Both the position numbers and the translations under genes were made by a program. This document shows, piece after piece, positions 33,875-53,960 of a stretch of 64,000 nt of DNA. The notes beneath the pieces were generated by a model. That model saw only the letters and a program-made list of their open reading frames with translations. It ran no database searches and was not told where the DNA came from. The stretch's first letter is position 1. Each line of letters starts with the position of its first letter. Source of the stretch: Lama glama (lineage: Eukaryota); assembly GCA_028534125.1 (NCBI GenBank), contig CM052840.1:8060001-8124000 (forward strand), written 5' to 3'.

Positions 33875-34480
33875 TCTAATTTTTACTCCAAAAATTCTAA
33901 ACCTACAAAAGATGTTTTAAAAATAGTATAATGAACATCACATGCCCCTTTACCTAGAGTTGCCAGTTTCTAACATTTGGCCATATCTGCTTGCTTTCTT
34001 TCTCATGTATATTTTAATTTTTTTCCCTGAATTGTTTGATAGCAATTGGCTGATATCATGACATTTTACTCCTAAATACTTCGTCAAGTATCACTTAAGA
34101 ACAAGGGCATATTCCTATATCGACACAGTAAATTAATCATACTTGAGAAATTTAACACTAATGTAATGTGATTACTCAATATAGTCCATATTGAAGTTTC
34201 CTCGATTTCCCAATAATGTTGTTTGTTGTCTTGTTTTTTATATTTAGGAGGTAATGGTGGACTATGCGTTATATTTAGTTACCATATCTCTAAGATAGTT
34301 CCTCCTCCCTGTTTCCTTCCTCCTCCCCCTCCTTCCCGGCCCCCTCCTCCTCCTCCTCCTTCCCCGCCCCCTCCTCCTCCTCTTCCTCCTTTTTTGTCTG
34401 TCATGTCATTGATATTTTAAAAGTGTCCAGGCCAAACATTTCCTGACTATTAGATTCAGGTTAAAGATTTTTCAGCAAAA
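33875..34480 (-). mobile_element. Old L1 3'UTR (L1MC4/5-like) containing a (CCT)n low-complexity tract at 34301-34390
   Basis: AAACCTACAAAAG...AATAGTATAATGAACA...TACTCCTAAATACTTC...TAAGAACAAGGGCATATTCCTATA. Confidence 0.7.
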
Positions 34481-44429: not shown

Positions 44430-46791
44430 CTATTGACTTTTTCCACCTGTATTTTTCTTCCCTCTTATAAAATAAACTATACTGATATATTCTAATTCTG
44501 TATAAAGATTAAACCTAAAAAGTAGGTAGGCTTGGACTTTAAGGCTTAAATATCATGTCGTATCTCTTCTTTTTGTGGATTTCTTCTGCCCGCACATTAA
44601 TCAGTGGGGATTTTACAGGGAGCAGGAAGCCCTGAAAATCTGGCTCCAGGTGAGTTGCTCAAGGTCATGGGCCTTTAGTAACAAAGTCAAATTCTGTACC
44701 CAGCCCCCCTCCTCCAGCCACTAGTGACACTGTCTCCCTCCAAATAAGAAAGTTGTTAACAGTACTCAGCAAACTATGCAAAACCTCTAAACCTTGTTAC
44801 CTTAAGTACTTTTTATTTTAATGGTGAAAAAAAGGTAGCAAGATTTTGCAGAGATCAAGAAAGCTTACAAGTCTAGATCAGGACTAACTGTGTTAGTTAC
44901 GGGTCTTTTCTGCCTTTTAATTCAATGTTTAGCATCTAGTGAGAATTATTATATTGCCTGCATCATGAGGACAAACTTGGCTTAACCTTTTTCTGTTTCT
45001 TTCTTTGTCTCTTCAGATACAGGAGAACACGGTTGGTAGCTTGAGAGTTGATCAGTCTGACTCTCAAATAGTTATTTATGTAATTTTCTCTGGCTTGCTT
45101 TCTCTTCCCATGGATATAAATAGTTTCTTCTTCTGGGGTAACTCTGCCTCTTAGAGAAAATGCTGCACTGCAGCGTTAGGACTGTAAATTACACATTAGG
45201 AGAGCTCTGCTGTGCTCCAACCTGGAAACAGAGGTTTATTTCTGTTCGAGTCTACACATTGGCTTGCCAGTGAGACAGCAGAGCATTATGTGGGTGCCTC
45301 TGGCTGGCTGGATTGGTAAGCAGTCCAAGCCAACACGTAGAAGGGTTCCAGGTACTCAGAAAACAATTTGAGAATCTAACACATAACAATATTGAGACTA
45401 CAAATAAATATGATATACAGTGTGTTCCTTTAAAGACCCTTTCACATACATGGGGTTAGATATAAAATTGTTGCTTATATGCCAAGAAGGTACACATAGA
45501 CAAGACTTACCGGAGGGAATGGAAATCATTATGGGCAGAAGTGTTTGGACAAGGCTTCTCAGAATAGCTGGTACTTAAGCTAGTCTGACAGTTAGAGGTA
45601 GGGTTTTTAAAGCCAGAGAGAAGAGCTTGTCCTTGGTGAGATACCCAATAAAGAGCAACTGAAGTTCTCCAACAAAAAGTTTTATTATTAAAGCAGTTAC
45701 TTGAAGACAATGTGTTTGACAGCAGTCAATAAGGTACACAGAATAGGGAGAGACCAGAGAGATGGAGCTCATGTATAAATGCACATGTTTCAGGAACTGG
45801 AACAATTTTCACTATGAGCCTTCATATTCCCTGGCTGGTAGGAATGTCAGGTCAGCTTCCTGGGTTGTCCCTCGTGTTTGGGTGGCACTGTGATGCTAAG
45901 GCGTGACGTGTTTGGCAGGGAGCAGAACCCCTGGTCCTTGGTCATCAGTCCAGTCTCTGCTGGGCTGTCCCTTGTTCTCATCCCCAGTGGCTTCTTGGAT
46001 GGCTCACTTGTCTACCTTAGGGCCCCTCTTGGGTGCATGAAAACCTACTCTCCTGCTTCCCGTGGGAGATCGCTGAGAGGTCTCAGTCATTTCTCCTACG
46101 CATCCTTTCCTAGGACACTGCTAATTCTGGGGTCTCCAGGAGACAAGGACATAGGTAATCTCTGCTCTCAATCCTCTCAGACCTGTGGGGGTTTTTGTTG
46201 AGTTGTTCGGCTCCTCCAGGGTTCAGCCTGGAAGGAAACTAAGGTGCATGCTCCTTTCTCAGATAAATACCCCAGCTTCTCTCTGGCTTTCCTTCCAACT
46301 CCCCCTCTTACCCGAGTCCTGAGGGGTCTTCCCTGGGCAGAGGGAGGCCTTGCTCCTGCATCATCGTGGATTTGCTATGACTGGAGCCCTGAGGCTCCCG
46401 AGATCCTAGGCTCCTGAAGCCCAAGGGTCTCCCCACTCCTGCTCTGCGATATCATTTCTTCTCTGGGTCACTGCCACTGACTGAAGGGGAGGTCACGGGA
46501 GGGGTTGAGAGGGGAATGCAGAGCTGTGTGTGATCTTCGGCTGTCACAAAATACTACTGCTATGGTAATAATCCAGAAATGAAGCCAGCAGGGCCAAGCG
46601 GCCTACGGACAGAAATGGAGTGAGGTGGACAAGAAATACAGGGAAGGAAGATATAACAGGATCTTGTTTGTGGAATACTCACAGGACGTAAGTGAACTTG
46701 GATGGGATTGGGCAGAACTGATGTCAGCTGCCAGCAGACCGATTTTTCCATGGCTCACATTTCCCTTTCGTTTTTCCCTTCATGCACAATG

Positions 46792-47435
46792 TTTCTTTCT
46801 TTCTTTATTTTTTCCTAGCAAAGCAAACATTATTGTGGCCCTGAGGTTGGGGCTCTTCCCTCCAGCTCTTGCTGAAATGGAGAGTTGGGGTGAGGGGCTC
46901 TTGTGTGCCCCCAACACGGCCATCACATTCAGACCCAGCACGGTGGTCTCGTGGCCCTCCCTCCTCTCTGTGACCGGGCCACTCCTGGTTTCTTGGATCC
47001 TGGCTTTTTAGGTCTCATTGTGGTTTTGGCCTTTCCCACAGGGCTCCTGTCTTTAAGACTGTATCTCACTGCCTCCTCTTCTTTTTCCACTTTTTTTTCC
47101 TTGGCAATGCTTGTCTGCTTCCCGGGGTGCCGGCCTCTTTATTTGATTGGCAGGGGTCTCCTTCCCTGGGGACACATCGGTATCCTCATTCTCTGCATCA
47201 TCTTACTCCTCCTTCCCCTCCTCCTCCAACTCTTCCTCCTTTACTTCCTCCTCCTCCCAGGGCAGGTCTGAAGTGTCATAGCCTTCCTGGCCACTGAGCC
47301 AGCCTGGAGCTGGAAGGTGACTGGAGGGGAAAGCGCCAATCCGCCAGGTCGACGTGGGGAGGACAGAGGCTCAAAGCGCAGGGTGACGGGCAACCCTCCC
47401 TGTCAGCCCGGCTTGCTGGGGGCAGGATCTCCAGA
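46792..47435 (-). pseudogene. NPM2: NPM2 (nucleoplasmin 2) processed pseudogene, 5'-truncated
   Basis: Minus-strand translation across frameshifts gives LEILPPASRADRE / PVT / ASVLP / GLALSPPVTFQLQAGS / SGQEGYDTSDLPWEEEEVKEEELEEEGKEE*DDAENEDTDVSPGKETPANQIKRPAPR / KQTSIAKEKKVEKEEEAVRYSLKDRSPVGKAKTTMRPKKPGSKK, colinear with the C-terminal ~70% of NPM2. No introns; 3'UTR with degenerate poly(A) signal (AATAAT, 46829-46834) and A-rich tail (46792-46813); premature TAA at 47203-47205. Confidence 0.93.
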
Positions 47436-47879
47436 AGAGACTATCAATTGCCCTGGACTCCTTTATTTCTCTGTCTGTCCTCACTCCCCTATAATTTATC
47501 CTATATCGAGCCATGAAAATGACCTTTCTGAAGCAACAACTGGATCGTGTCAGCCAAATTTCTCCTCTTGCTCCATCGTGCCACACAGTGCATCTAACTC
47601 CTGTGCACACAACCTGATAGAACCCTTCCCACAGGGCCACTCCTGCTGGTCCAGCTTCACCCAAGATCTCTCACCGAGGCCTGTGGCTTGGGCCAAACAG
47701 GAGGGCAGTGTGATGCAGTGTTTCAGAGCACGGACTCATTTCACGTAGCTTGCTTTGAGCCCTCACCCCACTGTTCACTTGGACAAGTTATTTGTGGTGA
47801 TTCAGTGTCTTCATCTATAAAATGTTGTTAGGAGCATTAGGTGAGGAGATATATATATATATATATATATATATGCAAA

Positions 47880-48428
47880 TATGTAATTGAAATATAGTCA
47901 GTTTACAATGTGTCAATTTCTGGTATGCAGCATAATGTTTCAGTCATACATACACATACATATATTCCTTTTCATATTCTTTTTTATTACAGGTTACTAC
48001 AAGATACTGAATATAGTTCCCTGTGCTAGACAGAAGAAACTCAATGTTTATCTGTTTTATACATGGTAGTTAGTATCTGCAAATCTCAAACTCCCAATTT
48101 ATCCCTTCCTACCCTCTTACTCTCCAGTAACCATAAGTTTGTTCTCTATGTCTGTGAGTCTGTTTCTGTTTTGTAAGTTCATTTATGTCTTTTTTTTTTC
48201 GACTCCACATATAAGTGGCATCATATATTTTTCTTTCTCTTTCTGGCTTACTTCACTTAGAATGACGATCTCCAGGTCCATCCATGTTGATGTAAATGGC
48301 ATTATTTTATTCTTTTTATGGCTGAGTAGTATTCCATTATATAAATATACCATATCTTCTTTATCTAGTTATATGTCGATGGACATTCAGGTTGTTTCCA
48401 TGTCTCAGCTATTGTAAACAGTGCTGCA
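47880..48428 (-). mobile_element. Lineage-specific L1 3' end inserted in a MIR (47700-47850, 48430-48475), next to (TA)n at 47849-47874
   Basis: AATTGAAATATAGTCAGTTTACAATGTG...GAATATAGTTCCCTGTGCT...GATCTCCAGGTCCATCCATGTTG; highly similar to 43488-43975. Confidence 0.9.
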
Positions 48429-52559: not shown

Positions 52560-53960
52560 GACGGCAAGGTTACCTCCCGCCGCCTCCGCAGCCTCCTTCG
52601 CACCGTTGTTCCCTGTATGCAGAGGCTCTCAGCGAGCATTTCCTTTTCCGTCCACGTAATTAACTTCCACTGAAGGAGCAGGGGGGAGAGTAGGTTCGCA
52701 ACGAATACTTGAAACACTCCCTAGAAGGTTTAAAGCCTCCCAGGGGTTAAAAACCTTTAACCCTGCGGACGCACCCTTTAACCGGCAGCACATCAAACTT
52801 TTCTACAGCAGTTTCGCTTCGGTGTTCCCGGAAGACTCCTTGACAAGGGCATAGGAAGACAAGGCTGAGAAACATCTTGGCCCCCTGCTCGATTAACCAA
52901 GGGCGGGCGGGCGGGCCGGCCATCCTACCGCCCGGCCTGGGGTAGGCGTCGGATACCTGGCCCCTGGGCAACCCCATCCCGCCCACCGGAAAGCGGGCAG
53001 CGTCCCGCGCTCTCCGTGGAGACGCCCGCGGAGGCGCAGACGCCTCCCGCCCTCCTTCCAGGAGCCGCCTGGGCTGCAGCTCCCGGCGGCGGCCACACCG
53101 GAAGCGGCCCCGGGCGCGTGCGGGGCAGCCGCGCAGGGTCCCGCGCGCGGGGCGGGGCCGCCGGGTCTTACCCCGCCTCCCGGGGGCGCGCGAGGGCCAG
53201 GCGGGGCCGCCGTCCCTTCCGGGGAGCGGTGGCCGCCGCCGCCTCCGCGTCCGCCGGGCGGCTCCCCACCCCGCCCCCCGCGGCTGTGGGTGACGCTTCT
53301 CCAATAACAGCTCGCGGGGAGCCGGCGCTCCGGGCTCCGCCAGCCCGGCCCGCTCTGCGCCAGCCCCGCCGCCAGCATGAGGGCCGAGGGCGACGGCGCT
53401 CTGGAGCGCTTCTGCAGCCCGGGCAAGGGCCGGGGGCTGCGGGCCCTGCAGCCCTTCCAGGTGGGGGACTTGCTCTTCTCCTGCCCGGCCTACGCCTACG
53501 TGCTCACGGTCAACGAGCGGGGCAACCACTGCGAGTTCTGCTTCGCCAGGTAGGGCGGCGGGCGGGAGCCGGGGGCGCCGCGGGGGCGGGCGGGCGGGCG
53601 GACCGCGGCGGGAGGAAGTGCGCGCGGCGCGCGGGGTCCTAGCGCCCGGGGCTGGGGGTGGGGTGGGGTGATGGGGCAGGCGGCGCCTTTGAACCCCAGG
53701 CCTGGCTATGCCACGTGCGTTAGGAAAGACGAGCCAAGTTCCCGCTGCACGCCCATCGCCGCACGTTTTCCGAGTTGCCCCGGCAGGATGTGCGATGTGC
53801 AAACCAGTGAGGGCGGGGTTCTGCCCTCAAACGCGGGCTCGGAGCCAGGCTGGCTCCCAGCACGGGCGCTGCCCACGAGGTGCGTTGCCAGCGGGGCCCC
53901 AGGTTCTCGCAGCCAGAGCCGGTCACCTTTAACTTGTGCTTCCTGCGGTGTGTTCTGTGC
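52560..53960 (+). promoter_or_regulatory. SMYD2: CpG island / TATA-less promoter of SMYD2
   Basis: Very high GC and CpG density around exon 1. GC boxes (GGGGCGGGG ~53149, CCCGCCCCC ~53270), ETS core CCGGAAG (~52828, ~53098), CRE half-site TGACG 53291-53295, CCAAT 53301-53305. Confidence 0.92.
53377..53549 (+). CDS. SMYD2: SMYD2 (SET and MYND domain lysine methyltransferase 2), coding part of exon 1
   Basis: ATG at 53377 in context gccgccagcATGa; 173 nt translate to MRAEGDGALERFCSPGKGRGLRALQPFQVGDLLFSCPAYAYVLTVNERGNHCEFCFA(R), near-identical to the mammalian SMYD2 N-terminus (N-terminal SET segment plus first MYND cysteines). Ends at donor CCAG|GTAGGG (phase 2). Not in the ORF track because the open stretch is only 58 codons. 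Confidence 0.98.

Follow-up and report, generated by a model that had tools for sequence, protein, structure and literature searches.

Processed pseudogenes made by the L1 machinery are a familiar class in mammalian genomes, many copies of NPM1 among them, and a heritable insertion of this kind requires germ cells or the pre-gastrulation embryo. In vertebrates, NPM2 is expressed mainly in the ovary and oocyte (PMC6233590), and one study reports heritable L1 events in the early embryo and the primordial germline (PMC5538555). A search of published papers found none on an NPM2 retrocopy or on a mammalian NPM2 pseudogene. Here we analysed a 64-kb stretch of DNA, referred to as the window throughout, whose minus strand carries, with a probability that we put at roughly 0.88, an old NPM2 retrocopy that arose by reverse transcription of spliced, polyadenylated mRNA and has been decaying neutrally since. 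The features that make up the locus and its neighbourhood, numbered from the first base of the window, are as follows.

46989 to 47440, minus strand: coding-derived body, contiguous and intronless; NPM2 codons 60-217, from the C-terminal part of the core through the acidic tract to the bipartite basic tail
47343 to 47375, minus strand: two shifts of frame, with small deletions, over the part matching ..LASLRASVLPMVVL.. (alignment, three-frame translation)
47373 to 47371, minus strand: TGA where artiodactyl NPM2 has Arg (alignment, translation)
47287 to 47300, minus strand: conserved GPVFL codons and one further base missing (~16 nt), which shifts the frame between ..QAGS and SGQEGYD.. (alignment)
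47203 to 47205, minus strand: premature TAA within the acidic tract (translation, alignment)
47119 to 47123, minus strand: one-base frameshift between ..KRPAPR and KQTSIAK.. (alignment)
46929 to 46988, minus strand: site at which the parental stop has been lost; the frame runs on for 19 codons to a TGA at 46931-46929
46814 to 46988, minus strand: presumed NPM2 3'UTR, ~175 nt, assigned by position only (between the coding homology and the signal and tail)
46829 to 46834, minus strand: AATAAT, a poly(A) signal that differs from AATAAA at one base; the A-rich tail follows 15 nt later
46792 to 46813, minus strand: decayed poly(A) tail (AAAAAATAAAGAAAGAAAGAAA), 22 nt, 82% A
53377 to 53553, plus strand: SMYD2 exon 1, 58 codons from the ATG (open reading frame; E 1e-33 to solved SMYD2 structures)

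The coding-derived body was delimited with our own frameshift-aware protein-to-DNA alignment, using the Vicugna, Camelus and 25 other NPM2 proteins as queries. A full-length NPM2 query had retrieved 120 mammalian NPM2 proteins, that of Camelus ferus among them, and the C. bactrianus and Vicugna pacos sequences were obtained by cluster look-up. The alignment placed NPM2 residues 60-217 on 47440 to 46989 of the minus strand, and the score over the whole copy was 403, against 75±9 (maximum 94) for shuffled protein. When Camelus ferus NPM2 was compared with the window by tblastn, the tail piece gave 39 identities over 46 residues with an E value of 1e-20, i.e., the tail is ~85% identical to camel NPM2. 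Translation of 47440-46989 on the minus strand yields, across three alternating frames and in NPM2 order, SLLEILPPASRADREGCP, ASVLP, GGLALSPPVTFQLQAGS, SGQEGYDTSDLPWEEEEVKEEELEEEGKEE followed by a stop, DDAENEDTDVSPGKETPANQIKRPAPR and KQTSIAKEKKVEKEEEAVRYSLKDRSPVGKAKTTMRPKKPGSKK.

An exhaustive HMMER search of 1.84 billion representative proteins with the 69-residue tail piece returned six matches, each aligned up to its own C-terminus (query residue 50); three are named NPM2 by their source, and three, which are unnamed or hypothetical models, have the sequence of NPM2 fragments. NPM1 and NPM3 proteins were absent from these matches and from those to solved structures. The single-frame pieces are too short for family and structure searches to be decisive: the best solved-structure match of the short core piece was the human NPM2 core (3t30) with an E value of 0.07, and Pfam PF03066 (Nucleoplasmin) matched the copy over an 18-residue remnant only (E 0.062; 14.3 bits versus a cut-off of 25.8), as against 1.9e-38 for intact Vicugna NPM2, in which the core spans residues 18-121. 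The remaining single-frame pieces gave nothing relevant in these family and structure searches, and a metagenome scan with the tail piece found no confirmed relative. Altogether, the tail identities, the alignment score and the six NPM2-like protein matches identify NPM2 as the source of the copy. The first-pass annotation of this DNA had proposed the same source from a handful of peptides and had suggested a tBLASTn check with NPM2 protein; the peptides that it quoted (EILPPA, LSPPVTFQLQAGS and SGQEGYDTSDLPWEEEE, with KKPGSKK closing the tail) were all located on the minus strand in three frames, and the check recovered the tail with Camelus NPM2.

We then considered the lesions. The first 59 NPM2 codons, including the start codon, are missing, and the N-terminal 62 residues aligned with the 660 nt upstream of the copy scored 40-42, no better than shuffled sequence (38-40±6). 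Because the truncation falls within the Pfam core, the start codon and a complete core were never part of the copy. The remaining body contains at least four frame changes, near 47371, 47343-47346, 47293-47296 and 47121. The TGA at 47373-47371 would have arisen from CGA by a CpG transition. The GPVFL motif, which is present in 17 of 17 living NPM2 proteins aligned, is missing from the copy. We also noted an identical TCAG at both edges of this ~16-nt loss, which could represent a microhomology deletion or the use of an alternative 3' splice site in the template mRNA. All NPM2 proteins end at ..KK, corresponding to 46989 in the copy, the point at which its own frame continues. The CpG observed/expected ratio of the copy is 0.28, like that of the surrounding bulk (methylated) DNA. 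The copy was dead on arrival, non-functional from insertion onward, because it had no start codon, no promoter and only a partial core domain.

At the insertion site, no target-site duplication above chance was found; the best match between the flanks was the 8-mer AAATAAAG, equalled by 25% of shuffles. The loss of such a duplication is expected because the copy is so old, but one hallmark of retrotransposition is thereby absent. Within the window we found no second copy of the flanking DNA (empty site), and no further NPM2 exon-like match by tblastn. The copy thus lies away from its parental gene, with SMYD2 as its neighbour and no other NPM2 exon in the 64 kb. SMYD2 exon 1 sits within a CpG island (GC 0.76, CpG observed/expected 0.89), and the 5' end of the copy is 5.9 kb from it, on the opposite strand, in a head-to-head arrangement. 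On the plus strand, the open reading frames overlying the copy are Leu/Phe/Ser-rich antisense translations of the acidic tract; those at 46903-47271 and 46625-47011 matched no Pfam family and were ruled out as real genes. In these respects the first-pass annotation was largely borne out: it had described a frameshifted copy of the C-terminal half of the NPM2 core, the acidic tract and the basic tail (residues 60-217 with at least four frameshifts in our alignment), ending in a decayed poly(A) signal and an A-rich tail (46834-46829 and 46813-46792), with no recognisable target-site duplication, about 6 kb upstream of SMYD2 and visible among the open reading frames only as an antisense shadow.

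Several other sequences in the window were recorded in passing. A GC-rich block at 45800-46790 (GC 0.52-0.56, CpG observed/expected ~0.2) adjoins the 3' end of the copy; it has no similarity to NPM2 and no second copy within the window, and it might be an old LTR or other repeat. Upstream of the copy, the minus strand at 47700-47830 carries what we take to be a MIR core (..ttatagatgaagacactga..cttgtccaag..), beside which lies an (AT)n microsatellite at 47850-47880. Farther away, at 34299-34400 on the minus strand, the NPM2 acidic tract had low-complexity tblastn matches to a repetitive, Glu-rich stretch (..KEEEEEEGAGKEEEEEGAGKEGEEEG..), which is probably no gene but a simple repeat rich in purines.

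The age of the copy was approached through its relationship to living NPM2 proteins. Overall, it is 64-67% identical to camelid NPM2 and 65-68% identical to the NPM2 of whale, hippo, bear and horse. We built a maximum-likelihood tree of the copy and 40 mammalian proteins, all of them NPM2; the input was ~150 aligned residues, the copy being represented by its conceptual translation with X at each break. The copy fell among the artiodactyl NPM2 proteins (clade support 99/93). The basal artiodactyl nodes are unresolved, and the copy joins pig and the camelids at one of them. The camelid clade itself (100/100) excludes the copy and has a stem branch of 0.11. The tip branch leading to the copy measures 0.43, ~3.5 times the camelid NPM2 path over equal time, and this length fits a copy that never functioned and has decayed neutrally. 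In AU tests, joining the copy to the camelids cost 0.00 lnL (p 0.46) and moving it outside all living artiodactyl NPM2 cost 1.8 lnL (p 0.20); a position outside Laurasiatheria cost 12.8 lnL and was rejected (p=0.007).

Individual residues refine this placement. Of 11 columns with a camelid-derived state, the copy is ancestral at 6, and the camelid states that it does share number three, all of which also occur in non-camelid species. The TS of YDTSD is retained in the copy and lost from camelid NPM2, and the ancestral PPAS, TFQL and KETP of the copy correspond to PPGS, TFHL and KETR, with G, H and R as the changed residues, in living camelid NPM2. The artiodactyl-derived states K179 (..KET..), R220 (..KDRSP..) and T228 (..AKTT..) are present. 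These comparisons of sequence place the copy at the base of Artiodactyla, on a branch that left before almost all of the substitutions specific to camelid NPM2 had occurred. Because artiodactyl states are present and camelid states almost absent, the template mRNA was in essence that of NPM2 as it stood in the artiodactyl ancestor or at the very start of the camelid stem. The copy is probably more than 50 My old, a rough estimate taken from general-knowledge divergence dates and not computed, and it may be common to all camelids and perhaps to other artiodactyls. No human orthologue is expected because the placement outside Laurasiatheria was rejected. The suggestion in the first-pass annotation that the copy is lineage-restricted therefore stands in part, in that its origin falls within Laurasiatheria; a recent, narrowly restricted insertion, which that wording might imply, is not supported, given the basal artiodactyl position of the copy, its equal distance from camelid and other NPM2 proteins, its exclusion by the camelid stem and its ancestral residues.

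We further sampled words from 46700-47600 and looked for them in sequencing runs. DNA runs with four organism labels contained 99 of the 99 words, and no other run contained more than 16% of them. Six runs share 8-16% of the words; RNA is on record for two of these and is a guess for four. The labels at this level include tick metagenome, 'reproductive system metagenome' and a fifth organism. Shares of this size could arise if the stretch is transcribed in part, if DNA was carried over, or if a relative, e.g., an Old World camel, has an orthologue that is ~95% identical.

Transcription would matter if the old copy had later been co-opted, either as a regulatory element or within a divergent non-coding transcript that starts at the CpG-island promoter of SMYD2, of which it would form an exon or another part and which would read it in the sense orientation. 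Both the head-to-head position, 5.9 kb from the CpG island, and the six RNA or guessed-RNA runs are compatible with such a role. However, word shares this small may come from DNA carry-over, from the orthologue of a relative or from the flanks, the copy has a CpG ratio like that of bulk DNA, no open reading frame survives, and the decay looks neutral, with a tip branch 3.5 times the camelid NPM2 path. We consider co-option very improbable.

A young retrocopy, present in South American camelids alone or acquired by camelids once most of their stem had passed, is less probable still, although the full set of words was confined to DNA runs under the four labels and the tail is 85% identical to camel NPM2. 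The low word share elsewhere is what ~5% divergence would produce and is not evidence of absence. The camelid proteins are no nearer to the copy than those of whale, hippo or bear, and the tree puts the copy outside the camelid clade, before the 0.11 stem, where its own tip branch measures 0.43. The 6 ancestral residues among the 11 columns with camelid-derived states argue in the same direction, as do the non-camelid occurrences of all three shared states, the frameshifts (at least four), the lack of a detectable target-site duplication and the decayed CpG content.

Exon junctions were inferred from predicted camelid NPM2 splice isoforms and not read from gene DNA; the clues were an 18-residue insertion after residue 90, skipping of residues 122-158, an alternative ending after 180 and a partial model ending at 192. 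Each of the resulting junctions (90|91, 121|122, 158|159, 180|181 and ~192|193) maps to adjacent bases in the copy, and the largest insert in the alignment to NPM2 is one codon, so that the earlier description of the copy as intronless agrees with what these predicted isoforms imply. Because the inferred junctions are contiguous and a poly(A) signal and tail are present, the sequence is a processed, mRNA-derived copy and not a segmental duplicate. The idea of a DNA-level segmental duplicate of part of NPM2, or of a copy of NPM1 or NPM3, draws only on the shared nucleoplasmin fold and the Pfam match to the general Nucleoplasmin/nucleophosmin domain, and it is effectively refuted by contiguity over at least 4-5 inferred exon junctions, by the poly(A) signal and tail, by the nesting of the copy within artiodactyl NPM2 (in a tree of NPM2 proteins) and by a protein search that gave NPM2-like sequences only, three of them named NPM2.

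We propose that a spliced, polyadenylated NPM2 mRNA would have been reverse-transcribed and then inserted upstream of SMYD2. The machinery was most likely the L1 endonuclease and reverse transcriptase, acting by target-primed reverse transcription. Reverse transcription would have ended early, leaving a copy that starts at codon 60, and neutral decay would have proceeded ever since insertion. Judging from the ovary-predominant expression of NPM2, it is plausible that the insertion took place in an oocyte, an early embryo or the primordial germline, and the first-pass annotation's proposal of the female germline or early embryo is therefore reasonable. The heritable retrocopying of a mainly ovarian mRNA is unsurprising and fits the known activity of L1 in the germline and early embryo.

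The copy is a commonplace fossil of the genome, and nothing about it suggests a function; it has neither an open frame nor CpG retention. It is tempting to speculate that the insertion is older than the split between camelids and other artiodactyls and survives upstream of SMYD2 in pigs, ruminants and whales, or that the copy forms part of a divergent SMYD2-promoter transcript; we regard this as rather unlikely, yet not far-fetched. If the copy is common to other artiodactyls, it would be a rare-genomic-change marker of use where the order of the basal artiodactyl branches is disputed. The copy preserves NPM2 sequence near that of the artiodactyl ancestor and thereby documents changes in the camelid NPM2 lineage; its worth as a dated fossil is modest and lies in PPAS, TFQL, the TS of YDTSD and KETP, all lost from living camelid NPM2. 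For annotation, the interval should be masked as an NPM2 pseudogene, lest the shadow open reading frames and NPM2-like peptides be called genes. Beyond annotation the copy matters little, being a further case of a well-known class, the processed pseudogene.

Compared with functional NPM2, as represented by the core structure 3t30, the copy still shows recognisable remnants of the last core strands (LSPPVTFQLQAGS), of the acidic tract and of the bipartite basic tail (KRPAP..KEKK..KKPGSKK), whereas it lacks residues 1-59 and GPVFL, carries at least four frame breaks and a premature stop, and is unable to make the pentameric core. With the L1-mediated processed pseudogenes of mammals, such as the many derived from NPM1, it shares an intronless, 5'-truncated structure that ends in a poly(A) signal and an A-rich tail, as well as insertion at an unrelated locus and frameshifts and stops accrued neutrally. 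It differs from members of this class in that target-site duplications are no longer recognisable around it, and from the NPM1-type pseudogenes in that its parent is expressed predominantly in the ovary and oocyte and is not ubiquitous (PMC6233590).
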